This document shows, in pieces, positions 12,718 through 29,584 of a stretch of DNA of 64,000 nt (position 1 is the first letter of the stretch; every line of letters begins with the position of its first letter). Location of the stretch: IMG/VR virus record IMGVR_UViG_3300044712_001255, positions 186,001 through 250,000 of that record. The stretch is one strand, 5' to 3'. The notes under the pieces were generated by a model. That model did not search any database. It had not been told where the DNA came from and worked only from the letters and a program-made list of their open reading frames with translations. A program made the position numbers and the translations under genes.

Positions 12718-12965
12718 TTGCTCTTTTCGTTTTTGTTTGCTGAGAACACTCTCACATTTTCAATGTTCAATAGAATACGGCACCCAATGCACTCTTTCTG
12801 AGTTATGAACACTTCTTGCAGATCGTGATGATCTATGATGGGTAGTCCACATGCTGGACACCGCACCTCAATTGTGCCTGCCGCATGGCACTTTATGATG
12901 TCATTCACGGTGTCACGGACGGTGTCACTCAGTTCCTGTTGCTTCTTCTTGTGCTTCATTGCCAT
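12714..12965 (-). CDS. small zinc-ribbon protein
   Basis: CPAC...CIGC. Confidence 0.6.
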   Translation of the reverse strand: MAMKHKKKQQELSDTVRDTVNDIIKCHAAGTIEVRCPACGLPIIDHHDLQEVFITQKECIGCRILLNIENVRVFSANKNEKSN

Positions 12966-13416
12966 CTGCAGCTCCTGTGCACGATTCTACAACGTCTGAA
13001 ACGAGCTGATCAATGAGCGTGCGGAGTTTGCAAAGGTCTACGATGTCAATCCGCATCAACCTACAAGAGTCGTAAGTTGTGCGACCACGATCACGTGCTG
13101 CCCTGTTGGGAACAGGAGATAATAACACAAGTGGCTTCACTTGCGTACGCCATATTGGTGATCCAGCGACTGGCGTCTTCGTTGTTTTGTACCGCGTGCG
13201 TCCTGTTTTTGGGTCTTTGTATGATCTCGACCAATTCGTCTTGGTTCGAAAACGTATCTTGCCTGGCTCTTCGTGCTTTTCAACCCTGTAGATCGTATTA
13301 GCCGCTGATCCGGTGGCGCCAACAACATAGACATATGATCCCACCGGAAATGCATTTTCTGGCGTGTCTTCAATCGTCTTGAATCTTGTCCTTAATTCCT
13401 TGAGAGTGCGTGCCAT
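12925..13416 (-). CDS. SH3-like protein (paralog 3 of 3)
   Basis: FPVGSYVY...IYRVEK...IDIVDLCKLRTLIDQLVS. Confidence 0.65.
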   Translation of the reverse strand: MARTLKELRTRFKTIEDTPENAFPVGSYVYVVGATGSAANTIYRVEKHEEPGKIRFRTKTNWSRSYKDPKTGRTRYKTTKTPVAGSPIWRTQVKPLVLLSPVPNRAARDRGRTTYDSCRLMRIDIVDLCKLRTLIDQLVSDVVESCTGAADGNEAQEEATGTE

Positions 13417-13447: not shown

Positions 13448-13690
13448 TCAACTCGCAAGACGCTCTATGATTGCAAACCATTCATAGGCAAGGATTATCT
13501 CATCAGATGCTTCGCCCGTGGGCAGGAGCAATTTTATGCGTACAGCAGTATCGTATCTCCTGCTATTTTTCTTCACCTCGATAACGATACCAGTGCGTTG
13601 CGACAAGAACGTCAATGGAACGTTGGTCTCGGACCGCCACGCAAGCACGTAGTCACCGGGTACGATTTCGCATGTCTGTACTTGTTCCAT
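13448..13690 (-). CDS. 'PGD' array paralog
   Basis: EIVPGDYVL...GIVIEV. Confidence 0.7.
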   Translation of the reverse strand: MEQVQTCEIVPGDYVLAWRSETNVPLTFLSQRTGIVIEVKKNSRRYDTAVRIKLLLPTGEASDEIILAYEWFAIIERLAS

Positions 13691-13732
13691 TTAGAACATC
13701 CTAACTCGTGTGTCACGATGCTACACAAATAA

Positions 13733-13981
13733 TTACGTCTTCACAGATACAGAAGCCCCCACAGGCACCTCAAGATTTAACACGTAGTCGTCTTGCAGCA
13801 CCTGAAGCTTTATGACATGAGGATTGTCGCTTGAGCAGACGGGACCACTTACGATGACGCCCCAGTTCCAACGGAAGTAGGTGACGCGGAGGCCGTTTGT
13901 CGTCTTCCACTCCCAATCTCCAAGAACTTCGTCTCCTTCAAGCAGATCTTTGACGTTTCTACGAACGCTGTTGGCTGACAC
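13733..13981 (-). CDS. 'PGD' array paralog
   Basis: DLLEGDEVL...GVIVSG; SD GGAGGAG. Confidence 0.65.
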   Translation of the reverse strand: MSANSVRRNVKDLLEGDEVLGDWEWKTTNGLRVTYFRWNWGVIVSGPVCSSDNPHVIKLQVLQDDYVLNLEVPVGASVSVKT

Positions 13982-14028
13982 TTCACGGCCCTCCTCCCGT
14001 TGATAGGTAGGCTGTGAATCAATGTCGT

Positions 14029-14304
14029 TTATCTCTCGTAGATTCTAAATGGACATTTGTATGAGTAGAAACGTGTGTGTACGCTATTTGACGTATCAAG
14101 TGTGGTTATGTCGATCCATTTCATACCATCAACATTTTCTTCTGTCAAGATGCTGATGACCATTTGTGGTCCACTTTGCACGAGTAACGCGTCACCAGGA
14201 TGTTCAGAGTCGATGAAATATCCGACAACGACATCACCCGGTATCAAATCACATGCCGAGATGTCGATTGTATTTTCACTCGTTTGAGTACACTTCATAT
14301 TCAA
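14029..14304 (-). CDS. 'PGD' array paralog
   Basis: DLIPGDVVV...MVISI. Confidence 0.7.
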   Translation of the reverse strand: MNMKCTQTSENTIDISACDLIPGDVVVGYFIDSEHPGDALLVQSGPQMVISILTEENVDGMKWIDITTLDTSNSVHTRFYSYKCPFRIYER

Positions 14305-14506
14305 GAATTACTGAGCAGGTGATGACAATCACATTTGACTTCAAAAGTAATTTGACACGATTAAATTTCCAGTTTTCTTCACGGCCTATCACGAGCGCGT
14401 TCTTGAACGCCTCTTGCTTGCCATCTTCGCCAGTTACAGCATAGCGTACATTACCCGTCAACAAATCGCCAGGACTAAAATCATAAGCATATTTCCACTC
14501 AATCAT
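14276..14506 (-). CDS. 'PGD' array paralog
   Basis: DFSPGDLLTG...ALVIG. Confidence 0.7.
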   Translation of the reverse strand: MIEWKYAYDFSPGDLLTGNVRYAVTGEDGKQEAFKNALVIGREENWKFNRVKLLLKSNVIVITCSVILEYEVYSNE

Positions 14507-14765
14507 GAGCGTAGATTTCTATTTGTTCTTCTTTGTTGCGATGAATTGTGACTATGTGATGATTCTGTAAAAAGAGAGTGATGACGTATACGTCATAAGA
14601 GAAATTTCCTCTTAGCGTTGTGATAAATGAACATTTGCTAATCACCATTGCATTCACCCATGCCTTACTTTTAATAGACGGAGTTGGATTAAGAAGACCA
14701 TCTTTCCAAGTGCCTGTAAGCAAATCACCAGGCACAAGTTCGTCAACTGTGACATACTTCAACAT
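14499..14765 (-). CDS. 'PGD' array paralog
   Basis: ELVPGDLLTG...AMVISK. Confidence 0.7.
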   Translation of the reverse strand: MLKYVTVDELVPGDLLTGTWKDGLLNPTPSIKSKAWVNAMVISKCSFITTLRGNFSYDVYVITLFLQNHHIVTIHRNKEEQIEIYAHD

Positions 14766-15018
14766 CGCGAAAGACCTCGTAGCGCTCATGTTGAGAGCCT
14801 GACGCGTTATACCATCTGTGACACACTTCACCATTTGGTAGCATCACTGTCAACCCGAATAAGTCACTGTGCTGTGAGCTGATGATCATGACGTTTGCAT
14901 AATCGCGCACGTAAGAAATATCAGCTTTACGCGGTGGTGGATTTAAGAACTTGATTTTACCAGTCAACACGTCACCAGGTATCAGTTCACTGCCATGTAC
15001 GTAGATACACTCATTCAT
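14743..15018 (-). CDS. 'PGD' array paralog
   Basis: ELIPGDVLTG...VMIISS. Confidence 0.7.
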   Translation of the reverse strand: MNECIYVHGSELIPGDVLTGKIKFLNPPPRKADISYVRDYANVMIISSQHSDLFGLTVMLPNGEVCHRWYNASGSQHERYEVFRDVEVCHS

Positions 15019-15349
15019 CGTACTTTTCCCTTACACAACGCAAAGAACAACCACGTACGAACCCGGAAATAACCCCTGAGTCTGATGCTGATAATGGCAC
15101 GACCTCATTGTTTGTTGTGAGCACCGTAATCTTCCAAGGAAAAGTTATATGTTCACCTTCAACCAACGTAGTGCTACACAACGTAGGCGTCTTTGAAAGC
15201 AAGATGCAGCGTTTAGTCAGCGTGTATTTCAGTCCATCGTTCGCCCAAATTTGCGACGGCTCATATTCTGAATGATAGTTGTGCCATATCCACGTGACTG
15301 CATCACCCGGTTCAATGAGAGCTATGCCAACAGCGTCTATGGGCTTCAC
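15011..15349 (-). CDS. 'PGD' array paralog
   Basis: LIEPGDAVTW...CILLSK. Confidence 0.7.
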   Translation of the reverse strand: MKPIDAVGIALIEPGDAVTWIWHNYHSEYEPSQIWANDGLKYTLTKRCILLSKTPTLCSTTLVEGEHITFPWKITVLTTNNEVVPLSASDSGVISGFVRGCSLRCVREKYDE

Positions 15350-15361
15350 ATTTCAATGATA

Positions 15362-15622
15362 TCACATTTTACACACGTCTGCATCGCGCTTGAGTCGAAG
15401 GGTGTACCAATCACCCAAGCAATACGTTTGCAGTACAGCATCATGGTAGATATAGCTTATGGAATATAGATCGTTTTTAGCGCCTTTTAGCTCAATGCTA
15501 ATCACAAGCTTTGGAAATGATTGCTCTTCTACATAACATGACATCGATGTAGGGTAAAATGCACAGAATATTGTGTCTCCCGGTTCAAGCTGATTGACTT
15601 CTATATGTTCTAAGTTGTTCAT
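15362..15622 (-). CDS. 'PGD' array paralog
   Basis: QLEPGDTIF...KLVISI. Confidence 0.7.
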   Translation of the reverse strand: MNNLEHIEVNQLEPGDTIFCAFYPTSMSCYVEEQSFPKLVISIELKGAKNDLYSISYIYHDAVLQTYCLGDWYTLRLKRDADVCKM

Positions 15623-15831
15623 TCATTATCTCGTGGTCTGTATATGTCAATTTCTTCTTCACCGCTCAACGGATAACACGATTCGCCGTGAAATGCAGGC
15701 ATAAACGTGATGTTCCAAAATCTGGACATGAGCTTGTGCGGTGGGATGACAGACACGATGAGGTAATGCTTGCCTTGAAAGAGATTGACGTCTCCTGGCA
15801 TAACGTCTTTGACTTTCATTTTTTCAAACAT
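15619..15831 (-). CDS. 'PGD' array paralog
   Basis: DVMPGDVNL...YLIVSV. Confidence 0.7.
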   Translation of the reverse strand: MFEKMKVKDVMPGDVNLFQGKHYLIVSVIPPHKLMSRFWNITFMPAFHGESCYPLSGEEEIDIYRPRDNE

Positions 15832-16078
15832 CGTCGTCCCTAAGCAACGTGACAAAGCCATCTGCGTCATCTTTTACGACAAGCGTCTCAGCTAGCAATT
15901 CATTGTGGTGTATTTCTCCGTCTTCTAACCAATAAACACATACCATCGATTTGGTGAATACGCTATCAGGGACGAGGCGCGTGACTGCGACTATTATTTG
16001 TGACGTTGGTGAATCATCTCGCTTGCGACCGACCAACCAATCGCCAGGAACGAGCTCGTCCATTCTGCAATTCATCAT
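15824..16078 (-). CDS. 'PGD' array paralog
   Basis: ELVPGDWLV...QIIVAV. Confidence 0.7.
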   Translation of the reverse strand: MMNCRMDELVPGDWLVGRKRDDSPTSQIIVAVTRLVPDSVFTKSMVCVYWLEDGEIHHNELLAETLVVKDDADGFVTLLRDDDV

Positions 16079-16317
16079 TCACCTTCGCGTGAAAATCGGT
16101 ACACTTCTCGTGTCTTCCAATGCGTTACTCTAAATAGATGTCCCTGAGTATTGAGAAATGTCAAACTACATGACCCGCTATCGAAAAAAATTGCAATCAA
16201 TAACTTGTGAAAGTGAGCATTTCCTTTATGACCTTCCCACGCAAACACATCACCGGGCAGCAGTCGCGCTATGTAAGTCTTTGTGAAAAGTTTATCTGAT
16301 GACATAGATGATATCAC
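16075..16317 (-). CDS. 'PGD' array paralog
   Basis: RLLPGDVFAW...KLLIAI. Confidence 0.7.
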   Translation of the reverse strand: MISSMSSDKLFTKTYIARLLPGDVFAWEGHKGNAHFHKLLIAIFFDSGSCSLTFLNTQGHLFRVTHWKTREVYRFSREGE

Positions 16318-16519
16318 TTGGAGAAGTTACGTACTCGCTTACGTCTGTTCTACCACGTTCTAACATCGTAAACTTAATGCTACCATGACGCAATTCATTA
16401 ACAGCAACAATTAAACATGCGTGAAGCCACTCATACACAAGGTGTTCGATACCCAGCCCAACGATTGTATCGCCAGGATATGCATCTTTTGCGCGCAGCT
16501 TTATCGCATCACTCTGCAT
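16292..16519 (-). CDS. 'PGD' array paralog
   Basis: DAYPGDTIV...CLIVAV. Confidence 0.7.
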   Translation of the reverse strand: MQSDAIKLRAKDAYPGDTIVGLGIEHLVYEWLHACLIVAVNELRHGSIKFTMLERGRTDVSEYVTSPSDIIYVIR

Positions 16520-16718
16520 ATCGCCAACACGCTACGTGCAAGTTGCCGTAATTCGTTATCGAATGATACCCATATTTCCCAATATAAGTGATATTAACTT
16601 TATCACCATGATTTTCATGAATTACAGAGATTACCAATTTACGATCCCCTAGATACCAAAGCCTAGCGTATAGATCTCCTGGCAGAAGATCATTGTACGT
16701 GCACTCTGAAAATTGCAT
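16509..16718 (-). CDS. 'PGD' array paralog
   Basis: DLLPGDLY...KLVISV. Confidence 0.7.
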   Translation of the reverse strand: MQFSECTYNDLLPGDLYARLWYLGDRKLVISVIHENHGDKVNITYIGKYGYHSITNYGNLHVACWRYAE

Positions 16719-16764
16719 ATCCTCTACAATAGAACAACACAATCATGTGATGTACCATCATTGC

Positions 16765-17472
16765 ATGCTAAAGTATCTCGTGTGCACAATGTATTGCGGT
16801 GAGCCTGACCTTCCGCATCATCTGAAGGCGATATCGCAACAAGGCGTTGAGATTGATCACAGGATCATCAGCTTCAAGAACGAGATGGAGGCACACAATG
16901 CCGTGTACTCTGCCTTCAACACAGCAGGTCCTGAGTGGATTCGTGCCAAGATTGATGCAGATGTGGTGCTGACGCCCAGTGTACTGGCTCGCATAGACGC
17001 GCCGTCAAACGCGTGGATTGACCCACAGACACACGACTTCTTCACGGATAAACTGCTACATGCCGGTGTGGCAATATATGGTAGCAGCGTCAGATTTCGA
17101 GTGCAGACTGACCCTCTGAAGTGTGATCGCAATGTGATAATCCCACCAGTAAATCAATGCGGTATTGGAGTGATTGGAACACACGCTGCACACGCAGATG
17201 AAATCACCGGATTTCACTTTGGATTTCACAGGGGCCTGAAGAGCCAGCTTCCCGTCTATGAGGACTTGCTGGCTGCATATAAGAAACACGGAGATCGAGT
17301 GCGGCTCATGGCAATTCGCGGGTTTGAACTCGGACAGTCAGATCGCTACAAGGAATGGCACCTTGGAGGAAAGCCTGTGACTGCAGACCACAACTACGGC
17401 GACGGCTTGCGACAGTTATTCGATGAGTTCAAGGGCGATGACGCACCCGTGCTTACTCGTACGTGGCGATAG
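16765..17472 (+). CDS. putative glycosyltransferase (GT-A-like) on the opposite strand inside the array
   Basis: YLVCTMYCGE N-terminal strand and AKIDADVVL DxD motif; TACCAT-6nt-ATG start. Confidence 0.55.
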   Translation: MLKYLVCTMYCGEPDLPHHLKAISQQGVEIDHRIISFKNEMEAHNAVYSAFNTAGPEWIRAKIDADVVLTPSVLARIDAPSNAWIDPQTHDFFTDKLLHAGVAIYGSSVRFRVQTDPLKCDRNVIIPPVNQCGIGVIGTHAAHADEITGFHFGFHRGLKSQLPVYEDLLAAYKKHGDRVRLMAIRGFELGQSDRYKEWHLGGKPVTADHNYGDGLRQLFDEFKGDDAPVLTRTWR

Positions 17473-17473
17473 A

Positions 17474-17704
17474 TCACTTTATTCGCAACACTGGATCATT
17501 CTTTGTGAATTGTAGCTCTTTGTAGCAGTTATTCCATCTTGGCCACAAGACACCAATAAGCCAGTGAAATGGCATCTCAGGGTCGCGACGTGACGTTATT
17601 GCTATGGCGAAAAATTTTGGATGGAATGCACATTCAACAAAGAACATGTCACCAGGCAAAATGTCTTTGGCAAGTACCGGTTCAGTGTATTGATCATCAT
17701 TCAT
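17474..17704 (-). CDS. 'PGD' array paralog
   Basis: DILPGDMFF...FFAIAI. Confidence 0.7.
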   Translation of the reverse strand: MNDDQYTEPVLAKDILPGDMFFVECAFHPKFFAIAITSRRDPEMPFHWLIGVLWPRWNNCYKELQFTKNDPVLRIK

Positions 17705-17901
17705 GCTAGTCGACTCACAAGGTAGATTGAGTCATATTGTCCCAAGTACCATTCTTGTACATTTGTGTCTGATAAACAGATTAACTTACGACTACGTTCA
17801 CGATTATCAACGAGTATGGCAATCACGAGTAGCAATGATTCATCCCTTGCGACCAAGAGATCACCAGGATGGATTTTATCATATTGAATGTAGACGCCCA
17901 T
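17701..17901 (-). CDS. 'PGD' array paralog
   Basis: KIHPGDLLV...LLVIAI. Confidence 0.7.
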   Translation of the reverse strand: MGVYIQYDKIHPGDLLVARDESLLLVIAILVDNRERSRKLICLSDTNVQEWYLGQYDSIYLVSRLA

Positions 17902-18233
17902 TATCCCTCGATCCCGTAGTACCCATAACAATTCGCCCACCGCGGCATAATCCACGTGCTGAAGAGACCACGATTGTCGATCACAAAGAACCCGCGGTGT
18001 GAAGAAGATATACCCACTTCATTGCTTATCTCCGACACAATAAGACAACGACATATTGTTAACGATCCAGAGTCAAATGCTAATGCTTGCGTCCCAGGAG
18101 AAAAGTCCTGTATGATATATGGTCGCAAAATTTTGAGCATTTCTACCTTTGATAATCCAACGTAAGGTTCTGATGAGAACGATGCTTGTGGCAACGATAG
18201 AAAAAACTCTTCAAGTTCCGGATTGATTATCAT
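17901..18233 (-). CDS. 'PGD' array paralog (extended N-terminus)
   Basis: DFSPGTQAL...CLIVSE. Confidence 0.6.
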   Translation of the reverse strand: MIINPELEEFFLSLPQASFSSEPYVGLSKVEMLKILRPYIIQDFSPGTQALAFDSGSLTICRCLIVSEISNEVGISSSHRGFFVIDNRGLFSTWIMPRWANCYGYYGIEG

Positions 18234-18534
18234 GTTCTTCGCTATTGTCTATGGCAAAGCTGGACTCGGTACGCGAAACATACCCTAAACTTGCATCAAT
18301 AACTGTTCGTCGCAACACACCACAAGCGTCTAACACATAGATTGATGAGTATGCATGTATGTCGTCTTCGCTTAGTTTGTCCTTATTCACCGCTATGACA
18401 AGTAGCGGATTGTGTATTAGCCTGTTATATCCTTCATCAAAATCAGGTAGCGTACTCTTGTGAGGAATGTTATTGAAATCACCTTCTCGTGTCCAGTACA
18501 CAAGGTCACCAGGCTTTGGAACGCAAAACCTCAT
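18211..18534 (-). CDS. 'PGD' array paralog
   Basis: PKPGDLVYW...LLVIAV. Confidence 0.7.
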   Translation of the reverse strand: MRFCVPKPGDLVYWTREGDFNNIPHKSTLPDFDEGYNRLIHNPLLVIAVNKDKLSEDDIHAYSSIYVLDACGVLRRTVIDASLGYVSRTESSFAIDNSEEHDNQSGT

Positions 18535-18719
18535 AGGATTTCACCATCTCTCAGGACGACGAAGCGTTCATTGTTAACAATTCGACATGTTACAACGTGC
18601 GTCGTTCCAAATTGAATTATTGATAACATGACGTAGACATCAAATTGAATTGACACGACAAGATAGTTCGTATCTCTATACAAGATGATATCGCCCGGTT
18701 GTATGTCCTTGATCAACAC
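18531..18719 (-). CDS. 'PGD' array paralog
   Basis: DIQPGDIIL...YLVVSI. Confidence 0.7.
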   Translation of the reverse strand: MLIKDIQPGDIILYRDTNYLVVSIQFDVYVMLSIIQFGTTHVVTCRIVNNERFVVLRDGEIL

Positions 18720-18934
18720 GATTCATCTCGTATGATGTTCCAAATTGGATGAATGGGATGACGATCTACGAAGCACAACTTACCTTGCGTTAGGTAGTGC
18801 AAATTCACATATCCATAATGATTGTCTACGCTAACAATAAGTATGTGGCGACGATTAGATGGCCATCCAGGCATTATTGCCAAATCACCGGGCAATAGCT
18901 GATTAGTTTTGACTTCAATCATTGATGCACTCAA
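18713..18934 (-). CDS. 'PGD' array paralog
   Basis: QLLPGDLAI...ILIVSV. Confidence 0.7.
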   Translation of the reverse strand: MSASMIEVKTNQLLPGDLAIMPGWPSNRRHILIVSVDNHYGYVNLHYLTQGKLCFVDRHPIHPIWNIIRDESC

Positions 18935-19118
18935 CAGAAAGCGTCTCTAGATAGCGCTTATATACGCGGCCAGTGAGTATGTCTGAATCATTCAAGACAG
19001 TAAATTCACATACATCATTCTCGAATACGAGAATTGATATCAGCATAGTCAACTTACTACCGCCGACGTAGTACACATCGCCTGGTGTAAGGTTGATTGC
19101 CGTTTTACGTGACATCAC
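18915..19118 (-). CDS. 'PGD' array paralog
   Basis: NLTPGDVYY...MLISI. Confidence 0.7.
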   Translation of the reverse strand: MMSRKTAINLTPGDVYYVGGSKLTMLISILVFENDVCEFTVLNDSDILTGRVYKRYLETLSVECIND

Positions 19119-19366
19119 AATCCTACTTCATCTTCGCAATCTACGCGTATGATTTTATCAGTATACCGCAATGTACCACGTATTACTTGCATTGTAGGAG
19201 AAACAACCGCGACGTAATACATGTCGTCCCCATATCCAGAGTGTTGTATCGAAACAATCATGCCGAGTTTCGTAGCACCGACACCGCCCAGACCGCCGCC
19301 TCCCCCGCAGTACACTATGTTACCCGGGACCAGGCTACCAAATTCGACAGTTTTGTAACCGCTCAT
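19115..19366 (-). CDS. 'PGD' array paralog
   Basis: SLVPGNIVY...GMIVSI. Confidence 0.7.
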   Translation of the reverse strand: MSGYKTVEFGSLVPGNIVYCGGGGGLGGVGATKLGMIVSIQHSGYGDDMYYVAVVSPTMQVIRGTLRYTDKIIRVDCEDEVGL

Positions 19367-19545
19367 TGTATTATGTCCAGTTCTTGATCTAGCGCCCAAG
19401 CGAAGCTGTGCAATTCACTTTTGCAAGTAAGGATTGTCACGTAAACGCCTGTGCCCGCATGCAGTACAGAAATGACAATAAATGTCATATGACTGTTAGA
19501 CATGTATCGTCCTAAACTTCCTGGTGTGATATCACGTACGTACAA
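19363..19545 (-). CDS. 'PGD' array paralog
   Basis: DITPGSL...FIVISV. Confidence 0.7.
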   Translation of the reverse strand: MYVRDITPGSLGRYMSNSHMTFIVISVLHAGTGVYVTILTCKSELHSFAWALDQELDIIQ

Positions 19546-19548
19546 GCA

Positions 19549-19761
19549 TCACCCCTCTTCAAGGCGCATAATCACCGCCGTCCAAGCGCCAACCCACTCT
19601 CCCGGCAATGGAATACATCCCTTGGGCGATAGAAGCGTAAGCAAGTGAAGATCAGATTCCCTACGTTCTACGCTTATGACCAACCACAGGGCGTTTTTGT
19701 TATCGTCAGTGACGATGATATCACCTGGTATGATATCTCGAGTCATCATCCTACGCAACAT
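19549..19761 (-). CDS. 'PGD' array paralog
   Basis: DIIPGDIIV...WLVISV. Confidence 0.7.
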   Translation of the reverse strand: MLRRMMTRDIIPGDIIVTDDNKNALWLVISVERRESDLHLLTLLSPKGCIPLPGEWVGAWTAVIMRLEEG

Positions 19762-19984
19762 CGCGTATCACTCTCATCTTTTTCATGTGATGCATGATTT
19801 CTTTAATCAGTTTACCATCGTATGTCAGCAAACTACACTCGATGAGTCCAACGTGAATGTAATCGTCTCTACAACAACGAACGACAGCAATCACAAGCGC
19901 AAACCGTGAATTTACAATCATAACGTCGCCAGGAACTATTTCAATATCCAATGATCTTGCGTCATTCTTGTAGCCTCTCGACAT
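19751..19984 (-). CDS. 'PGD' array paralog
   Basis: EIVPGDVMI...ALVIAV; start uncertain. Confidence 0.65.
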   Translation of the reverse strand: MSRGYKNDARSLDIEIVPGDVMIVNSRFALVIAVVRCCRDDYIHVGLIECSLLTYDGKLIKEIMHHMKKMRVIRDVA

Positions 19985-20228
19985 ACAACGTCAACCTGCT
20001 AAAGCTAATGTTTGTCGGTAAATTGTACAGCTTACCATCACCATTTACGACGCATATGCAATTTATGCCTTCACCCGCCCGTATTTTTACGCTAATTACT
20101 AAAGCAGGCGGTCGTAAGATGCATAATTTTGGCGTTGCGTTGACCCACATAGTTCCTTGAGTCCACCAGATCAAATCACCTGGCAAAACATTGTCGAATA
20201 AATCCTGGCAACATGTTACAGTGATCAT
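19962..20228 (-). CDS. 'PGD' array paralog
   Basis: NVLPGDLIWW...ALVISV. Confidence 0.7.
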   Translation of the reverse strand: MITVTCCQDLFDNVLPGDLIWWTQGTMWVNATPKLCILRPPALVISVKIRAGEGINCICVVNGDGKLYNLPTNISFSRLTLYVERLQE

Positions 20229-20464
20229 GTTTCCTCTTCGCGAGGAAACCGCTTGAATTTAAAATCTGTTCTGTACATCACGTGTGTCGGACCAACGCTG
20301 TCTACGGAATTGAGAATCATCATAGCGACATTATCAACTATGCGTCCATTATACGTGTATATGAGCTGCGTAGAAATTATCAACCACTGCGTTTTGAACC
20401 ACAACACCACATCACCTGGGAGCAGTTCATCTGCTCGGCAATCGATCATATCATTATGAGTCAT
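20225..20464 (-). CDS. 'PGD' array paralog
   Basis: ELLPGDVVLW...WLIIST. Confidence 0.7.
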   Translation of the reverse strand: MTHNDMIDCRADELLPGDVVLWFKTQWLIISTQLIYTYNGRIVDNVAMMILNSVDSVGPTHVMYRTDFKFKRFPREEET

Positions 20465-20687
20465 CTTGCTTTAATCGACGTATTGTTCCAAATTGATGCT
20501 CCCCGATTGTTTTCTTACTCACCCTACCATTGTCATAAATCATCGTAAGCATGCGATATTGATAATCATCTAGTGCTGTAGATTTGACATTCTGCGCCGC
20601 AATGACCAACCGCCACACATTTGCCCACATGATCATGTCACCGGGCACAATTTCAAAGGGGTTGACGTATTCGTATTCGTCAGTCAT
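20454..20687 (-). CDS. 'PGD' array paralog
   Basis: EIVPGDMIMW...RLVIAA. Confidence 0.7.
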   Translation of the reverse strand: MTDEYEYVNPFEIVPGDMIMWANVWRLVIAAQNVKSTALDDYQYRMLTMIYDNGRVSKKTIGEHQFGTIRRLKQDDS

Positions 20688-20896
20688 GATTCATCCACTG
20701 CGAAACGATGTATCATAGTGTCACCTATAGGAAATGTTCTTTCTATCAACTTTTGTGTTTGAAGCACTATGAGCGTATATCCAATGTGTTTATGGTATTT
20801 CATTGTGATGACAAGACATAGGCCATCACCAAATACAGACACATACGCATCACCCGGCTGAAGATCACGTACGCACGCGTTTTTAGCAAACTTCAT
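20684..20896 (-). CDS. 'PGD' array paralog
   Basis: DLQPGDAYV...CLVITM. Confidence 0.7.
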   Translation of the reverse strand: MKFAKNACVRDLQPGDAYVSVFGDGLCLVITMKYHKHIGYTLIVLQTQKLIERTFPIGDTMIHRFAVDES

Positions 20897-21125
20897 GATG
20901 CATCCTCTCCCTTGAACACACGGGTGACTGTTCCATCATAGACAAAATACCTACTTTGATAACGCCCTTGTGACATACAACCAACTCACAAAGGTTGTGG
21001 CATTGATATGAAGTAGGGAGATTTTTAACGCTGATGACAATAGAGGGACTGTTAAAGTAATAAATCACATCACCAGGGCATAGGTCGCCCACATACGTTT
21101 GTTCGTGATGTATCCACTTGCTCAT
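20883..21125 (-). CDS. 'PGD' array paralog
   Basis: DLCPGDVIY...SIVISV. Confidence 0.7.
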   Translation of the reverse strand: MSKWIHHEQTYVGDLCPGDVIYYFNSPSIVISVKNLPTSYQCHNLCELVVCHKGVIKVGILSMMEQSPVCSRERMHHEVC

Positions 21126-21319
21126 GTGTTGTATCTACGGATGTGGCATATTGAGTATACAAAGTAATGCCTATGTTTCACAACGTCATCCAATATAATG
21201 GCATGAATACGTTCTTTTTCAACACATACGCTGAGCACAAGACACCATCGTAAGCCAACTTCCATTACGTCTCCTGGAAAAAGTCCCATTGCCGCTATCA
21301 ACATTTCATCATCATTCAT
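21122..21319 (-). CDS. 'PGD' array paralog
   Basis: GLFPGDVME...CLVLSV. Confidence 0.7.
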   Translation of the reverse strand: MNDDEMLIAAMGLFPGDVMEVGLRWCLVLSVCVEKERIHAIILDDVVKHRHYFVYSICHIRRYNT

Positions 21320-21539
21320 GAGCGTACTTCCATAGCGTCACAGTCCAATTTTCTGCGTAGTGAAATGAATCAACTTTACCATCGATCAACACTGATACGA
21401 TGATTCGCTCATATGATACACGCATGTTTATGGCTACGCCTACGACCATGCGCATGGCGCCAAGACAAAGTAACAGATCGCCCGGCTCGATTTCACAAGC
21501 GCGATGGCGATATTCGTCAGTAAGTTCGTCCTTAAACAT
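21312..21539 (-). CDS. 'PGD' array paralog
   Basis: EIEPGDLLL...RMVVGV. Confidence 0.7.
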   Translation of the reverse strand: MFKDELTDEYRHRACEIEPGDLLLCLGAMRMVVGVAINMRVSYERIIVSVLIDGKVDSFHYAENWTVTLWKYAHE

Positions 21540-21738
21540 GGATGTGACGCACGAACTTGACTGTTTCCAACTGCTCAAAGAGATAAGGGACATTCCGTCC
21601 GTTTATCAGAACGTCTGCTCGGATGTTATCGTACACTACTCTCCAAACTGCGATCACTAGCTTCTCACCCATACCAGACACGACAAGCATGTCTCCAGGT
21701 TGAAGCTCGTACGCAAAACCCATCTTTGCGTTTGTCAT
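21532..21738 (-). CDS. 'PGD' array paralog
   Basis: ELQPGDMLV...KLVIAV. Confidence 0.7.
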   Translation of the reverse strand: MTNAKMGFAYELQPGDMLVVSGMGEKLVIAVWRVVYDNIRADVLINGRNVPYLFEQLETVKFVRHIHV

Positions 21739-21947
21739 GATCTCTGCTCTTCTCCCCACTGCCAGGTATACATGGTGAAATTGAAGTGGAATTCTCTTTT
21801 CACTATAGCGTTGTTGCTGGTGAGTAACACAGTCAAACACGTAGAATTCCAATCGTGATATACACTTACGATGAGGCAGTATCTCGAGCCTTCGAGTATC
21901 ATATTACCGGGCACGAGATGCCGCACTTCCATTCTTGAAAAAGTCAT
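21735..21947 (-). CDS. 'PGD' array paralog
   Basis: HLVPGNMIL...CLIVSV. Confidence 0.7.
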   Translation of the reverse strand: MTFSRMEVRHLVPGNMILEGSRYCLIVSVYHDWNSTCLTVLLTSNNAIVKREFHFNFTMYTWQWGEEQRS

Positions 21948-22153
21948 GTTCGATACTTCACGCAATGCACAGTCCACCATCTCTGACATAGTTTGCGTTC
22001 TAATGTATTGTCACTGCGCAAGACAATAAAATTGATGTACGCCGAAGAACGACGTACGCTGACGACAAGTTTACCTTCAACTATGTCGCCTGGCTCAACG
22101 TCGTTCACAACCATTACGCCATCAAATACATCATCAACATAGTTTATTTTCAT
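21944..22153 (-). CDS. 'PGD' array paralog (close duplicate of neighbour)
   Basis: DVEPGDIVEGKLVVSVRRS. Confidence 0.7.
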   Translation of the reverse strand: MKINYVDDVFDGVMVVNDVEPGDIVEGKLVVSVRRSSAYINFIVLRSDNTLERKLCQRWWTVHCVKYRT

Positions 22154-22344
22154 ATTTGATATTTTGCACAATGCACCGTTGAACCTGTGATGCACACGAA
22201 TCGTTCCAATACGCTGTCGCGGTGCAGGACAGTAAAAACAACTCGAGTCACAGAACGATGAACACTGATGACGAGCATTCCCTCGACTATGTCGCCGGGT
22301 TCAACAACATCCACGGACATTATCCCAATGCTCTCGTCAGTCAT
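22150..22344 (-). CDS. 'PGD' array paralog (close duplicate of neighbour)
   Basis: VVEPGDIVEGMLVISVHRS. Confidence 0.7.
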   Translation of the reverse strand: MTDESIGIMSVDVVEPGDIVEGMLVISVHRSVTRVVFTVLHRDSVLERFVCITGSTVHCAKYQI

Positions 22345-22589
22345 ATAGCTTGTGCCAATTCAACACGCTCGAGCTGCACATGCTTGTGGAACTTATACTG
22401 TTGAACTTGTGTGCCAACGAGCACAGACAATGTTACACTTACGTTGGAATTGTCAATATCAACACTCACGATAATGCACCACCACTTCTTGGTATTGTGG
22501 TCAACCCATAATCCTACGATATCACCAGGGCAGATATCTGTTACAAATACCAATTTGCAATTTTCTCGAACAGGTCTCCAATTAGACAT
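22341..22589 (-). CDS. 'PGD' array paralog
   Basis: DICPGDIVG...CIIVSV. Confidence 0.7.
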   Translation of the reverse strand: MSNWRPVRENCKLVFVTDICPGDIVGLWVDHNTKKWWCIIVSVDIDNSNVSVTLSVLVGTQVQQYKFHKHVQLERVELAQAI

Positions 22590-22794
22590 ACAGCTTCACT
22601 TGTGTGTCGCACAAATAGCGCAATTCACGCACCCCAGAACGCCAAAGAACGCGCAGGAGAATGAAATGTTTTTGTTCGTAGACAATGCTTAATATAAGCA
22701 CCCGTTCTGGAGGAAAACATAACATATCGCCCGGCTCAAGATCACAGGCCAATACAGATATGTACTGTGGCAATTCGATCGTGTCTTTCATCAC
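22582..22794 (-). CDS. 'PGD' array paralog
   Basis: DLEPGDMLC...VLILSI. Confidence 0.7.
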   Translation of the reverse strand: MMKDTIELPQYISVLACDLEPGDMLCFPPERVLILSIVYEQKHFILLRVLWRSGVRELRYLCDTQVKLYV

Positions 22795-23021
22795 AGCTTG
22801 AGCTTTTTCAAGACAGACATACTGGAATACCCAATCTCAAGAAGGCCAAATTCTGTGAGAAACTGTAACTTCATAAGACGCTGACTATTAGTTTCTCTAC
22901 ATGTACCGATCACAAGCGCCCATCCAATTTGATGTCCGTGAAACCGCCACTGCGCAATGTCTCCCGGAACAATGTTGCCAGCATATTCCCATTCCCAATC
23001 GATTGCTTTACGCTCGTTCAT
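22791..23021 (-). CDS. 'PGD' array paralog
   Basis: NIVPGDIAQW...ALVIGT. Confidence 0.7.
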   Translation of the reverse strand: MNERKAIDWEWEYAGNIVPGDIAQWRFHGHQIGWALVIGTCRETNSQRLMKLQFLTEFGLLEIGYSSMSVLKKLKL

Positions 23022-23254
23022 GACCACTTCGCCCTGCGAATGTGCACACATGACGTTAGCGCAAACACATGTTCGGTTATTGCGCCATAGCGCAAACACG
23101 AAACAAAGATACGTTTGTTGCCTTGATATTCTCCTGATCGTACGCTAATCACAAGGGAAAATTCCATGCCAAATTCACGCAGAAGATCACCAGGTTCAAT
23201 CGAACATGCTTGGACGTATTCAATACCGAAGCTTGTGTGGGAATCAATAATCAT
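23018..23254 (-). CDS. 'PGD' array paralog (RSGEY subfamily)
   Basis: SIEPGDLL...SLVISVRSGEYQGNKRIFV. Confidence 0.7.
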   Translation of the reverse strand: MIIDSHTSFGIEYVQACSIEPGDLLREFGMEFSLVISVRSGEYQGNKRIFVSCLRYGAITEHVFALTSCVHIRRAKWS

Positions 23255-23480
23255 CAGCTCTTATCATGACAAAATACAAATCGTTGTTATCTACCCAAGT
23301 AGACATTAGCGTTGAATCTCGTAAGGTTGTCACATAGCTACGTTGTACGTCAACATTCTTGTGATGCTTCACACTCACTACAAGCACAGCACGCTTATTA
23401 GAGTAATTGCTATAGAACACAACATCGCCGGGAACCAAGTTCCCTGCACGTTCCCAACCTTGCCCACATTTATTGCTCAT
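23244..23480 (-). CDS. 'PGD' array paralog
   Basis: NLVPGDVVFY...VLVVSV. Confidence 0.7.
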   Translation of the reverse strand: MSNKCGQGWERAGNLVPGDVVFYSNYSNKRAVLVVSVKHHKNVDVQRSYVTTLRDSTLMSTWVDNNDLYFVMIRADDY

Positions 23481-23709
23481 TGTTCATCCTACGAACGTGA
23501 ATATGCGTCGTTGGAATAAACAGAGTCTCTAGCACAACACCGTGCTCAATATATGAGACAAACACGCGTTTTGCACCTCGATATTCTCCTGATCGTATGC
23601 TGATAATGAGGTGAAATTTCCCGTCGTAGTCGTACATCATATCACCTGGTTCAACCTTGTGGATTGGAACGTAAGCGACATCTGGGTCTGTGTGGGAACC
23701 AAAAATCAT
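23470..23709 (-). CDS. 'PGD' array paralog (RSGEY subfamily)
   Basis: KVEPGDMMYD...HLIISIRSGEYRGAKRVFV. Confidence 0.7.
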   Translation of the reverse strand: MIFGSHTDPDVAYVPIHKVEPGDMMYDYDGKFHLIISIRSGEYRGAKRVFVSYIEHGVVLETLFIPTTHIHVRRMNNEQ

Positions 23710-23906
23710 GTATCCCTCTCAAGAATCATAACGCCGTCACTTGGTAAGAATGTAACAGTTGCAAGTTGATTTCCTAACAATGTTGTAAGTTTGATGTAGT
23801 AATTTTCTGGCGTGGGAAGAAACACCGATATCACAAGTCCCCATCGAAACAACACATCACCCGGAATAACATTGCGAGCAGCTACGTGCATGATGTTATG
23901 GCTCAA
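23706..23906 (-). CDS. 'PGD' array paralog
   Basis: NVIPGDVLF...GLVISV. Confidence 0.7.
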   Translation of the reverse strand: MSHNIMHVAARNVIPGDVLFRWGLVISVFLPTPENYYIKLTTLLGNQLATVTFLPSDGVMILERDT

Positions 23907-24141
23907 TGTTCATCCTGCGAATGTGCAGGTATACTACTGGTATAAGTTTAATTTCTACCACCACACCACATTTCAAATATGAAATAAAGATGCGTGTTGC
24001 GTTGTGATATTCTTCTTGCCTTGCAGCGACCACGAGGTGAAATTTTCCAAGGTGATCATACAACATATCGCCCGGTTTAACCTCGTCCGCGCGAATGCAA
24101 TCAATTGTCATATCTGTGACGTCTGCATGAGTATCAAACAT
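23896..24141 (-). CDS. 'PGD' array paralog (RSGEY-like subfamily)
   Basis: EVKPGDMLYD...HLVVAARQEEYHNATRIFI. Confidence 0.7.
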   Translation of the reverse strand: MFDTHADVTDMTIDCIRADEVKPGDMLYDHLGKFHLVVAARQEEYHNATRIFISYLKCGVVVEIKLIPVVYLHIRRMNIEP

Positions 24142-24322
24142 TACAACACTCGCAAAGCACCAAGAATAATTCGTCGAGGCGTTCGCAACGCATGACAAGA
24201 AAATTCTCACGTAACATCATCACAGTGACATTGTGTGTATTTGGTCGAACACTCACCACAAGACAGACGTATCCACCATGAAAGACAAGATCGCCGGGTG
24301 TTAGGTTCTCAGCTTGTTTCAT
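24134..24322 (-). CDS. 'PGD' array paralog
   Basis: NLTPGDLVF...CLVVSV. Confidence 0.7.
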   Translation of the reverse strand: MKQAENLTPGDLVFHGGYVCLVVSVRPNTHNVTVMMLRENFLVMRCERLDELFLVLCECCNV

Positions 24323-24522
24323 TGTTCTCTCGTCAAAATCACGTACGAGTTTTCGATCGGTTGCCAAGGCCATGTTATAACACACCCCCTATACAATGTG
24401 ATTATCTTTGCAGAATGCTCAAGAGCGTTAAATTGCACTTTGATCACAAGAGCGGGACCGCCGCCAAAAATGATGACGTCGCCCGGGACAAGGTCAGCTA
24501 CTGGACACGCCTCGTTGTTCAC
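24319..24522 (-). CDS. 'PGD' array paralog
   Basis: DLVPGDVII...ALVIKV; GTG start. Confidence 0.7.
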   Translation of the reverse strand: MNNEACPVADLVPGDVIIFGGGPALVIKVQFNALEHSAKIITLYRGCVITWPWQPIENSYVILTREQ

Positions 24523-24773
24523 AGGTCCCTCACCAAGATTATGTGACCTGTACAATATTCTTTGTAGTAATTCCCTAAGACACCGTTAATCAATGTTGTC
24601 ACTTTGACGTGGTTACCATCATGCATCACACTTATCACAAGACCAGTATAACGCCCACGTCGATAGAAAACGATATCACCCGGAACCAGGTCTTCCGCTG
24701 CACACCATTGTTGGTCGCTCACTGAACTTGAGCTATCATCGATCGTCGAGCTCGTGGGGGAACCAAAAATCAC
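24519..24773 (-). CDS. 'PGD' array paralog
   Basis: DLVPGDIVFY...GLVISV; GTG start. Confidence 0.7.
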   Translation of the reverse strand: MIFGSPTSSTIDDSSSSVSDQQWCAAEDLVPGDIVFYRRGRYTGLVISVMHDGNHVKVTTLINGVLGNYYKEYCTGHIILVRDL

Positions 24774-25003
24774 GATTCCCTCACCATGCACGCATACCGA
24801 GACTCATTGACTGCGTGTAGAGTGATCACTTCACTGCCGAACAGATAGACAAGAACAGTACAATCCAAATGCGCTCGACACGACCTAACGCTTATGACAA
24901 GTGCCATGTCCTTTATGACATCGCCTGGCTCAAGAGATATCGCTCTACGCCATTCGTAGTTCTTGATCAACATGTCTTTGACGATAAAATCTGAATAGTT
25001 CAT
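24770..25003 (-). CDS. 'PGD' array paralog
   Basis: SLEPGDVIKDMALVISV. Confidence 0.7.
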   Translation of the reverse strand: MNYSDFIVKDMLIKNYEWRRAISLEPGDVIKDMALVISVRSCRAHLDCTVLVYLFGSEVITLHAVNESRYACMVRES

Positions 25004-25317
25004 AGCTCAACCACGGGAATCAACGTGAATTCATTGCTGAATTCAAATGAACTAATCGTCCCTCGCGCGGCAGACAAAATCCAAATCTTCCTCGCGTCTT
25101 CATTGTGAATACTGGCAATCACCATGCCCTTGTGCATCCGAAGCTCAACAAATCTGTCACCCACTGTCCAAGTACCACCTATGCTGTTGTGCAACAAGTC
25201 TCCAGACTCGAGCTCATACGGATATTTCAAGACTACACCCTCAATAGGCTCCAAGTACGGAGGCAGACCTCGCTTGTAGGGGACATACACAGCCTCAGGA
25301 TACTCTATGCTAATCAT
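25000..25317 (-). CDS. 'PGD' array paralog (extended)
   Basis: ELESGDLL...GMVIAS. Confidence 0.65.
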   Translation of the reverse strand: MISIEYPEAVYVPYKRGLPPYLEPIEGVVLKYPYELESGDLLHNSIGGTWTVGDRFVELRMHKGMVIASIHNEDARKIWILSAARGTISSFEFSNEFTLIPVVEL

Positions 25318-25568
25318 GGACTACACTCGAACATGTCCGTGCCGTCACGAAACCAACAATCACAATCCATCGTTGATTTTTCATGATAGTACATGGAATA
25401 CAATTCATAGTTGAGCGTGGCGGGATGATGTCCAAGCCAGTGCACAGAAATCCCGTTATGTTCAATGCGTTCCGTGGAGACAACAATGCGTGCACCACGA
25501 CGACCACGTACAATCATGTCTCCGGGCAGGAGTTCACCCACAATAACGTAATGATCCACTGACATCAT
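25314..25568 (-). CDS. 'PGD' array paralog
   Basis: ELLPGDMIV...RIVVST. Confidence 0.7.
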   Translation of the reverse strand: MMSVDHYVIVGELLPGDMIVRGRRGARIVVSTERIEHNGISVHWLGHHPATLNYELYSMYYHEKSTMDCDCWFRDGTDMFECSP

Positions 25569-25685
25569 AGTTCTCGTCGATCGTCGAATTCACATGCGTC
25601 ATCGATCGTCGAACCACGTCGACAACGCAATCAACCATGATGTCTCTCGATCTCCAACACATCTTCACGGCACCGCAACCAAAAA

Positions 25686-25916
25686 TCAAATCCATAAAAT
25701 ACGGACAGTGTCCCAGTATCTCAGCTTCTTATGGTAAACAGACTTACGCTTTAAGAAAGTCACATCATACCAGGCAGAATCACCACCATCACCCTTCTTC
25801 ACGCTGATCACTAGGCTCCACTGATCATTAGGCATGAAAGGTCTGTCTCCTAGAACATAGACAAGGTCTCCCGGCAGCAACTCACAAGCCGGCTTGTACT
25901 TCAAGTCGTCACTCAT
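25686..25916 (-). CDS. 'PGD' array paralog
   Basis: ELLPGDLVY...SLVISV. Confidence 0.7.
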   Translation of the reverse strand: MSDDLKYKPACELLPGDLVYVLGDRPFMPNDQWSLVISVKKGDGGDSAWYDVTFLKRKSVYHKKLRYWDTVRILWI

Positions 25917-26164
25917 TGCTCTCTCAATACAAGCAACAGCTCGTTCATCCAGATCCAAGGACCAAATGTTCGCAAATAGAAAGTCCCGTCCGATGTCAGG
26001 AGCTGCATTGATTTGCAATAGGCTGATATGACAAGCGTAGGCCTTCGAACATATTGCATCTCTGCATGCACATCCCAGGGTTTAGAGTGCCCTTTGACTC
26101 GAGCATCTACTATCAAATCTCCAGGTAGGGCATCTCCCCATGCTATCTCGATAAGTCTCTGCAC
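25913..26164 (-). CDS. 'PGD' array paralog (first in array)
   Basis: DALPGDLIV...TLVISA; GTG start. Confidence 0.65.
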   Translation of the reverse strand: MQRLIEIAWGDALPGDLIVDARVKGHSKPWDVHAEMQYVRRPTLVISAYCKSMQLLTSDGTFYLRTFGPWIWMNELLLVLREQ

Positions 26165-26762
26165 TGTACAACAGTACCACACGAACTCCCACAGCTGCAT
26201 CGAGTGAGTGCAGCGTCTCACCGCACTCACCTTCCATACAGGGGTGCGTGACAGGTGGATGCGTACCTGTTGACGCATAGGGGGCACAGGGTAAGGCGAT
26301 GTGTGCGAGGGGCTGCGGTGTGACGTGGTGGGTGGCATTATGCTGATATCTTTGATTTCAGGCACTTACGCACATCGCGCATAGTGCAGTTCACCAGCGA
26401 TGCGCAGTGGGCCCTTCGACCACCTTGCGCCACCTGCCCCCATATTTATCGCAATCGACATCGACTTACGCACAGCTCACGCAACACGCGAGCTGCACCG
26501 GCCCCGGCTAACCCTAGGGCGTGGTGACTGGAATACCCTCTTGCACCCATCTCAGCTGCACCAGATACATCAACGTTGATTGTAAGCATTGCAGATCTTT
26601 GGGATGCATCGACGGGAGCTGCACCCCGGCCCTCCGACAATCTGAGCACGGGATTGGTAAGTGGCTTAGAATAAATGGGACAGTGAGAGTGGGTGCTATG
26701 GGAGGCTGGTGACCCGGCAGGCTGTAGTGTAGGTGACCTTAACCTTATGGTAGTATTGGCTC

Positions 26763-27005
26763 ATGAGTGCAATACTATTCGTTTTCAATGTGTTCCGGTG
26801 GGTGACGCTCATCGGTGAAGTTTACTTCTATACATCGGTGTTTCTCATTGTGCCGACGTTCGCTGCTACACTCGCGTTCTTAGAGTACATGCGTGAACAA
26901 CCGGTACGATTCTTTGAGCACTTCGCGTGGTACACCCTGTGTTGGTGCATCGGCAGAACGATTAGGATCGCTGTCGATATCTGGCGCGTGTACACTGCGA
27001 AGTGA
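26763..27005 (+). CDS. small membrane protein
   Basis: Hydrophobic helices; TAGTAT-6nt-ATG leaderless-type start. Confidence 0.55.
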   Translation: MSAILFVFNVFRWVTLIGEVYFYTSVFLIVPTFAATLAFLEYMREQPVRFFEHFAWYTLCWCIGRTIRIAVDIWRVYTAK

Positions 27006-27086
27006 TGCACATATGCGCCTAACCCAGGGTGCAACGGTCTTAAATGCCGGCACGCGACAACGTCAATTGCACCGTGTAGATCATAG

Positions 27087-27326: not shown

Positions 27327-27410
27327 GCGTAGATCATAGTTGATCTCATTCGAGCAACGTGCATGCCGTATACAACGCGCGACGGACAGCCCTCATGCGG
27401 GCGAGAGGAG

Positions 27411-27484: not shown

Positions 27485-27487
27485 AGG

Positions 27488-28156: not shown

Positions 28157-28233
28157 ATCCTATCAGGAGTTCGCGCCGATTGCACACAGTCCTACGATGA
28201 TAGCGATGATTATCACCAGTGCGAAGAGCTCTG

Positions 28234-29581: not shown

Positions 29582-29584
29582 GAT

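Follow-up and report, generated by a model that had tools for sequence, protein, structure and literature searches.

A tandem array of 51 small genes occupies positions 13448-26200 of the window, the 64,000-nucleotide (nt) stretch of DNA analysed here, which corresponds to positions 186,001-250,000 of IMGVR_UViG_3300044712_001255, a 324,468-bp viral contig of an uncultivated jumbo phage. The array encodes a family of small proteins marked by a Pro-Gly-Asp (PGD) turn, which are predicted to share one SH3-like barrel, are strongly diverged from one another, and appear each to have retained a constrained surface of their own. We hold this structural and evolutionary description of the family with high confidence. 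As to function, we tentatively favour, by analogy, a set of soluble binder proteins that are expressed together and serve in host takeover or counter-defence, a proposal that we rate as plausible but short of probable.

Organization of the array

The 51 open reading frames (ORFs), all intact and all tiled on the minus strand, encode 60-112 amino acids (aa; median 77) and are packed into 12.75 kb, in line with the approximately 51 ORFs of 60-110 aa counted in an earlier note on this DNA. Start codons were inferred by choosing, for each ORF, the one that overlapped least with the gene upstream of it; a few of these choices, chiefly that for the first gene, are uncertain. ATG is the start of 44 of the 51 genes, and the chosen starts exhibit stronger Shine-Dalgarno-like pairing (mean -3.4 kcal/mol) than other start-like codons of the array (-2.0 kcal/mol; p=2e-4). 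Consecutive genes overlap at 45 of the 50 junctions, by 4 nt (ATGA/GTGA) at 20 of them, by 8 nt at eight and by 11 nt at six. The GC content of the array (0.43-0.47, against 0.49-0.59 over most of the remaining window) bears out its earlier description as an AT-richer block. The array had also been portrayed as a single co-directional, translationally coupled block; the coupling is upheld by the overlaps, but the block is interrupted by one plus-strand gene that had gone unmentioned, here termed the embedded gene.

Given these stop-start overlaps, joint production of the array proteins is probable, and the array probably forms two long polycistronic units of 38 and 13 genes. We infer co-expression from a promoter in 26201-26760 and from another one downstream of the embedded gene. 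A promoter or leader of the array must lie in 26201-26760 because plus-strand ORFs occupy 26763-27326. An Rfam search of 26201-26760 returned no match, and neither sigma-70 promoters (29 found vs 32 expected) nor intrinsic terminators (13 found vs 11 expected) were in excess.

A single divergent protein family

The strict motif h-x-PGD, where h is a hydrophobic residue, is present in 42 of the 51 ORFs at a spacing of ~200-250 nt, and the remaining ones carry PGN, PGS, PGT, SGD or EGD in its place, so the claim that every ORF follows the PGD pattern holds for most, not all, of the array. In an all-against-all BLASTP comparison, 34 members formed one connected component at E<1e-3. Furthermore, in a split-half cross-validation in which hidden Markov models (HMMs) were trained on every second member, 45 of the 51 held-out members were detected at E<0.01, compared with none of 1020 composition-matched shuffled decoys, and a chance effect of composition is thereby discounted; the marginal members, named here by their lowest coordinate, were 25913, 25000, 17901, 15011, 14276 and 13733.

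The motif is not in itself diagnostic of SH3/KOW barrels, of which the earlier note had considered it typical: h-x-PGD also matches inteins, NlpC/P60 and CHAP domains, RTX repeats and the A domains of P-type ATPases, and a PDB sequence search with the family profile matched only the PGD stretch, in an intein and a CHAP domain (E>=0.18). Pfam revealed no family match for the 51 members, only scattered single-member scores at E>=0.007, and the same applied to PHROGs, NCBIfam and PADLOC; these searches, like that of the PDB, agree with the earlier statement that no named system corresponds to the array.

Copies outside the array were scored with an HMM that excluded them from training, and only matches better than ~1e-3 were counted because the ORF of translation initiation factor IF-1 (8660-8884), a false positive, scored E 0.012. 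About ten outlying copies had been proposed, of which six are supported (27718, 10833, 9, 27488, 10626 and 8138), two are marginal (7832 and 27087) and one, 63281-63808 (+), was undetected by the family HMM. One or two further copies reside in the 10 kb upstream of the window (L019 9485-9763, E 6e-5), and we estimate from sequence matches that the family comprises roughly 57-60 members in and just beside the window. The ORFs 12925-13416 (-) and 63281-63808 (+), of 163 and 175 aa, are HMM-negative and contain PGD-like or 'G-S-Y-V-Y-V-V' hairpin motifs; they may encode other small-barrel proteins.

Predicted fold and variable surfaces

Two members were modelled with AlphaFold2: the 84-aa product of 24519-24773 from the 51-sequence alignment (model 1; predicted local distance difference test score, pLDDT, 78.4, with about 90 in the core) and the 62-aa product of 18531-18719 from 58 sequences of the window, L014, L007, L009, L016, L015, L003 and L006 (model 2; pLDDT 88.8). 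Both models exhibit a five-stranded, strongly bent antiparallel small barrel of ~60 residues. The Foldseek PDB neighbours of model 1 included the Tudor domain of PcrA/UvrD (5dma, the top match, with a template-modelling score, TM, of 0.67 on the target), eIF5A, EF-P, the Tudor domains of 53BP1 and UHRF1, and the KOW domain of NusG; those of model 2 were almost only domain I of EF-P, EfpL or eIF5A (TM 0.73-0.80, root-mean-square deviation 1.6-1.7 A, 57-65 columns). Nearly all top PDB neighbours of both models are SH3-like barrels, and the neighbours found in BFVD are uncharacterised phage proteins of 60-90 aa (E about 1e-3 to 1e-2, TM 0.5-0.66). The predicted models are thus consistent with the SH3/KOW-like fold that had been guessed from the sequence.

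A conservation profile of 91 sequences (window plus L014) revealed a hydrophobic residue two positions before the proline, followed by P (93%), G (100%) and D (91%), and also conserved two hydrophobic residues of strand 1, the strand-2 stretch L-V-I-S-V, the alternating hydrophobic residues of strands 3-5 and a C-terminal Arg. The profile places most insertions in two loops, b1-b2 (up to 16 plus 14 residues) and b2-b3, the latter varying in length by up to 15 residues among members; the tails are of variable length as well. According to the models, the scaffold would therefore consist of the x-P-G-D turn leading into strand 1, the buried strand 2 and the hydrophobic residues of strands 3-5, and it is the two loops, the exposed strand faces and the tails that differ in every paralog. 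The earlier picture of a conserved scaffold with variable loops is borne out, conservation being confined to the turn and the buried strands. No transmembrane segment was predicted among the 51 members.

The neighbours of model 2, the higher-confidence model, lend some weight to an alternative in which the proteins would be translation-directed factors, that is, mimics of EF-P/eIF5A domain I or KOW domains that modulate host ribosomes or act as competitors of EF-P and of the enzymes that modify it. Domain I gives the best superposition of the 62-aa model and shares its hairpin register ('F-R-x-G-l-k-i ... V' in EF-P, 'L-x-P-G-D-h-h ... LVISV' in the family); moreover, the phage encodes IF-1 and a tRNA-Met beside the array, and the arrays of relatives, or regions near them, carry genes for IF-1, methionine aminopeptidase, PTH2 and tRNA-binding proteins. 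However, EF-P and eIF5A possess one or two OB domains after domain I, whereas the family members are single domains of 60-112 aa. The modified Lys/Arg at the loop tip after strand 2 of EF-P/eIF5A has no conserved equivalent either, since profile columns 36-43 hold 0.2-1.0 bits without a dominant Lys/Arg and the b2-b3 columns, of variable length, at most 0.8 bits. None of the 51 members matched the Pfam families EFP_N, eIF-5a, KOW (PF00467), Hint/intein, PemK or CcdB at E<=1, and hhalign of the family against an enterobacterial EF-P alignment, a shallow profile of limited sensitivity, yielded a probability of 1.3%. The glycine/lysine motif of the NusG/Spt5 KOW domains is missing from the family, and NusG is a weaker structural neighbour (TM on query 0.32-0.40). 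Finally, the proteins are mostly acidic, and fifty distinct conserved surfaces misfit a single ribosomal site. We consequently regard a translation-directed role as improbable. The kinship with EF-P/eIF5A or KOW proposed in the earlier note does not hold on these grounds, the general RNA or ribosome binding that it envisaged is disfavoured by the acidic isoelectric points (median 5.8), and of the 'tRNA-like RNAs' that it invoked only one tRNA gene, the tRNA-Met at 27411-27484, was found in the window, in which an RNA-family search detected nothing else.

Slightly more doubtful still is a function as nucleic-acid-binding regulators or chromatin-like proteins, comparable to the zinc ribbons of phage G or the SH3-like Sul7d/Cren7. 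DNA and RNA binders exist among SH3-like barrels, and a transcription-factor or DNA-binding role has been suggested for the phage G expansion (Iyer et al., PMC7824862), but 30 of the 51 PGD proteins have an isoelectric point below 6 and only 3 have one above 8, and the 91-sequence profile contains no conserved polar, basic or aromatic surface column. Tudor domains resemble the family in being small stand-alone protein-binding barrels, 5dma being the top match of model 1; Tudor and chromo-like readers, however, have an aromatic cage, whereas the family displays neither a conserved aromatic column nor sequence similarity to them.

Other candidate identities were rejected. The resemblance to Hint/intein domains is limited to a short 'a-x-x-h-x-PGD-V-V' stretch shared with the Pho RadA intein (E 0.18), and the members are too short for such domains. 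The MazF/CcdB toxins (~100-110 aa) did not feature among the 50 highest-ranked Foldseek neighbours of model 1 or model 2, and readings of the motif or fold as AbrB-like or Sm/Hfq were unsupported by Pfam or by the top structural neighbours.

Divergence and selection

Paralog identity averages 20% over match columns. Adjacent genes are hardly more similar than random pairs (21.3% vs 20.2% identity, p=0.03), and the nearest paralog is located within two genes for only 9 of the 51 members. Near-duplicates with identities of 56% (21944/22150), 34-45% (23018/23470/23896), 40-57% (27488/27718) and 30-45% (14499/14743) were confirmed among those listed earlier, but 14276, which had been grouped with the last pair, showed no significant similarity to either gene. 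The set 23018/23470/23896 is interleaved, with a period of 426-455 nt that corresponds to a two-gene cassette. Tandem birth followed by divergence, as proposed in the earlier note, is accordingly visible in a few pairs, but it does not describe the bulk of the array. DNA-level repeats are confined to a few recent duplicates, which argues that the array is neither an assembly artefact nor the product of recent amplification.

The Logan assembly contig L001 is 100% identical to the window and, showing no difference from it, is unsuited to selection analysis. L006, a 2.9-kb JGI contig from a closer relative, is collinear with window positions 15187-17664, and the orthologue statistics refer to eight gene pairs from this one short contig. 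Gene order is preserved across the eight pairs, which are one-to-one orthologues with 38-72% amino acid identity, saturated synonymous sites (proportion of synonymous differences, pS, 0.59-0.96) and a ratio of nonsynonymous to synonymous substitution rates (dN/dS) of 0.2-0.4 where dS was computable; the orthologue of the embedded gene is 85% identical, with a dN/dS of 0.05. Core columns are 74% identical between orthologues and 40% between paralogs, and non-core positions 47% and 10%, respectively. Since positions that differ among paralogs stay conserved between orthologues, each paralog appears to have its own constrained surface. The array genes are, as far as these sequence comparisons indicate, real coding genes under constraint. 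In L006, the orthologue of 17701-17901 (L006 121-323) is split into two overlapping ORFs, one with the PGD half and the other with the LVIS half, which represents either a frameshifted pseudogene or an assembly error of this low-coverage contig.

These data bear on the alternative that the array is neutral filler, generated by tandem duplication after capsid enlargement (a ratchet) and made of copies without individual functions, as arrays of >30 similar genes in phages G and 121Q have been interpreted (PMC5646251). The few recent duplications, including the two-gene cassette, and the frameshifted appearance of one L006 orthologue are in keeping with it. We nevertheless judge it unlikely, given that all 51 ORFs are intact, that orthologues keep their order across saturated synonymous divergence with a dN/dS well below 1, that paralog-specific non-core residues are conserved, and that the family is common to phages only ~45% identical in a core ATPase.

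Distribution in related phages

When 1.84 billion representative sequences were searched exhaustively with the profile, 66 matched, 25 of them small proteins from other contigs; the long matches were rejected as homologues, being motif repeats in NlpC/P60-like, RTX-like and low-complexity proteins. A word-indexed protein search with the profile returned the window's own proteins alone, IMG/VR searches with single members or flanking genes returned only the source contig, and one metagenome scan queried with a member gave no match. Among 50,697 phage records, megablast of the array found zero matches and tblastn of one member, the embedded gene and the AAA_5 ATPase found no close cultured relative (best E for the member, 0.9); the GroEL and ATPase of the window are at most 45% and 30% identical, respectively, to any phage record. 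By these sequence criteria, no cultured phage is close to the phage of the window.

The largest related array was found in the 91.9-kb Logan contig L014/L020, where ~60 small genes extend over ~15 kb (43 ORFs at E<1e-3; 44 with the strict motif), preceded by tandem DUF6197 genes and by a RadA/KaiC-like ATPase 46% identical to that of the window. L015 (78 kb) contains ~45 small genes, 10 of them HMM-positive, beside methionine aminopeptidase and IF-1, and L016 carries an AAA_5 and RadA-like pair (43% identical), DNA polymerase III alpha and several family members. In the window, L014/L020 and L016, copies thus lie close to a common RadA/KaiC-like ATPase whose identity between phages is only 43-46%. 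L009 and L007 are short array fragments, and the GC-rich L003/L004 (ATPase 46% identical) has a cluster of ~8-10 shorter 'KPGD' relatives. No HMM-positive copy was detected in L005 within ~10 kb of its ATPase, nor in L010-L013, which contain homologues of the embedded gene 53-73% identical to it, within 10 kb on either side of that gene. The embedded gene has 43 homologues and no Pfam or PHROG match; in L010-L013 it lies, at ~10001-10700, between a PD-(D/E)XK nuclease and two GT4 glycosyltransferases, in a region that also holds NAMPT, NUDIX and sugar-nucleotide or NAD-salvage genes.

The best identity of window members to L014 members (median 30%) is similar to that to their own paralogs (31%); being as close to the copies of a distant phage as to each other, they belong to an old family. 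As judged from these contigs, the family is old and restricted to a clade, belongs to the accessory genome and ranges widely in copy number (0 to about 60). Just upstream of the L014/L020 array, at least eight tandem DUF6197 genes occur on both strands (L020 2752-8046 and L014 13990-14355), and since this family and the PGD array share one contig, several multigene arrays coexist in the clade. A few kb downstream of the same array, from L014 20199 onward, an 881-aa protein with MVP_shoulder and Vault_3 Pfam matches is encoded.

The distribution and setting of the family also bear on the alternative that the proteins are virion-associated, whether as packaged and ejected internal proteins, as decoration proteins or as a hetero-oligomeric assembly of many paralogs. 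Translational coupling would favour their co-production, and other jumbo phages have paralogous sets of internal or structural proteins. Nonetheless, the array is surrounded by replication-type and homing-endonuclease genes, not by morphogenesis genes, it is missing in relatives that share the surrounding core genes, copy number spans 0 to about 60, and the profile reveals no N-terminal cleavage or targeting motif. A virion role hence seems to us a poor prospect.

Proposed function

The reading that we favour, with due caution, is the co-expressed repertoire of soluble binder proteins introduced above. Every paralog would use its own surface to bind a distinct macromolecule, in most cases a host protein, and would act stoichiometrically as an inhibitor or adaptor, and the array would serve as an accessory host-takeover or counter-defence repertoire. 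This proposal is drawn from the analogy with small early and anti-defence phage proteins and with viral multigene families, and also from the observation that, in the Viral AlphaFold Database, no phage-only fold clusters are larger than those of the SH3/Tudor-like barrels, proteins of unknown function (PMC12487901). In a bolder and somewhat less likely version, the array would be a germline library of ~50-60 natural mini-binders that share a single SH3-like scaffold and are individually adapted to different host proteins, for example defence effectors or components of the transcription, translation or proteolysis machinery, and it would have been long maintained in a clade of uncultivated jumbo phages.

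Several points weigh against the binder repertoire. Fifty different targets is a large claim, and ~50 paralogs could also have been retained for a shared role, for instance as parts of a hetero-oligomer. The neighbouring replication-type and homing-endonuclease genes do no more than suggest early timing, and no sigma-70-like signal stands out as a promoter. No member matched known anti-defence, defence or host-takeover families in PADLOC, PHROGs, NCBIfam or Pfam, none of which is a dedicated anti-defence library. With regard to the fold, the Foldseek E-values are weak (0.04-1), as is usual for 60-residue barrels, and both models were built on the family's own alignment and are thus not independent tests of a shared fold.

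The locus offers ~50 natural variants of one small-barrel scaffold in a single operon-like block, each surface being under selection, and the question of which targets the barrels bind could be addressed with one pooled library. Should the barrels prove to inhibit host proteins, a whole range of bacterial targets or defence systems would be revealed together, and the barrels could serve as compact scaffolds for binders. Being ancient, diversified and retained, the array further indicates that such tandem blocks in jumbo phages do not have to be filler or the outcome of recent duplication.

Features of the window

The coordinates of the array genes, of the outlying family members and of the neighbouring genes are compiled in Table 1.

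Table 1. Coordinates of the PGD array, outlying family members and other features of the window; array genes are listed in transcription order.
Feature	Position	Strand	Remarks
Upstream array block	17474-26200	-	38 tiled, mostly overlapping genes; start of first gene (25913-26200) uncertain
Array genes 1-7	25913-26200, 25686-25916, 25314-25568, 25000-25317, 24770-25003, 24519-24773, 24319-24522	-	
Array genes 8-14	24134-24322, 23896-24141, 23706-23906, 23470-23709, 23244-23480, 23018-23254, 22791-23021	-	
Array genes 15-21	22582-22791, 22341-22589, 22150-22344, 21944-22153, 21735-21947, 21532-21738, 21312-21539	-	
Array genes 22-28	21122-21319, 20883-21125, 20684-20896, 20454-20687, 20225-20464, 19962-20228, 19751-19984	-	
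Array genes 29-35	19549-19761, 19363-19545, 19115-19366, 18915-19115, 18713-18922, 18531-18719, 18211-18534	-	
Array genes 36-38	17901-18233, 17701-17901, 17474-17704	-	followed by the plus-strand embedded gene
Embedded non-family gene	16765-17472	+	235 aa from conserved Met; longest ORF starts at 16693; splits the array in two
Downstream array block	13448-16718	-	13 genes; from ORF tiling, family HMM and L006 orthologues in order
Array genes 39-45	16509-16718, 16292-16519, 16075-16305, 15824-16078, 15619-15831, 15362-15622, 15011-15349	-	
Array genes 46-51	14743-15018, 14499-14765, 14276-14506, 14029-14298, 13733-13981, 13448-13690	-	
GC-rich ~560-nt stretch	26201-26760	-	no convincing ORF; upstream of array; putative promoter/leader
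Family pair	27488-27721, 27718-28026	-	E 1.7e-5 and 2.5e-8; upstream of tRNA-Met, same strand
Family members	10626-10832, 10833-11138	-	E 1.8e-4 and 4.7e-8; far end of same minus-strand block
Isolated family member	8138-8389	-	HMM E 2.5e-4; motif VPGD
Family member at window edge	9-242	+	HMM E 8.9e-6
Marginal candidate	7832-8110	+	HMM E 0.011; IVPGD; strength similar to IF-1, not counted
Marginal candidate	27087-27326	+	HMM E 0.079; FLPGD ... ILIVAV pattern fits
80-aa ORF	26763-27005	+	resembles small membrane protein
UvdE	265-1215		
GroEL	1579-3159		
SPFH/Band_7-like gene	5882-6961		
Translation initiation factor IF-1	8660-8884	+	74 aa; 60% identical to eIF-1a/IF-1 gene beside L015 array
HD protein			in window
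GIY-YIG homing endonuclease	29585-30277		
RadA/KaiC-like ATPase	31099-31929		
MoxR-type AAA_5 ATPase	32396-33613		

Comparison with known systems

The small SH3/Tudor-like phage proteins of the Viral AlphaFold Database (PMC12487901) coincide with the PGD family in size and fold class; for these barrels, no 50-copy array is described in the literature that we found, and no PHROG family matches the PGD members. Divergent single-fold paralogs that are clustered, accessory and variable in copy number are likewise found in viral multigene families and in the immunity arrays of polymorphic toxins, although these involve other hosts, folds and mechanisms; the comparison is one of analogy, and no homology is claimed. 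If the mini-binder library were real, it would, to our knowledge, exceed every other single-fold effector repertoire described for a bacterial virus and would parallel, in a phage, the multigene families found in large DNA viruses of eukaryotes.

Closer in kind are the tandem arrays of >30 'very similar genes' in phages G and 121Q (Hua et al. 2017, PMC5646251), cited in a review (PMC13282480), and the ~35 zinc-ribbon copies of phage G (Iyer et al. 2021, PMC7824862). Like the PGD array, those of G and 121Q lie in genomes >200 kb, where dozens of small paralogs that arose by tandem duplication are clustered in a single block and point in the same direction. The 121Q array was rejected as a locus of the same family, as the PGD HMM gave only E>0.07 across the 150 kb of 121Q covered by the scan (L021-L023). 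Two adjacent arrays occupy contig L023 of Escherichia phage 121Q: ~15 RCC1-like 'DNA condensation' genes lie on one strand (17089-31255) and at least 16 genes of 60 aa starting 'M-H-K-E-Y-Y' on the other (31358-35194), both sets being unrelated to the PGD family. The G/121Q arrays differ in being composed of very similar genes from other protein families, whereas the PGD paralogs are ~20% identical, ancient and common to distant phages. In summary, the PGD array is a new protein family in a known kind of genome feature, larger and far more diverged than the arrays of phages G and 121Q.

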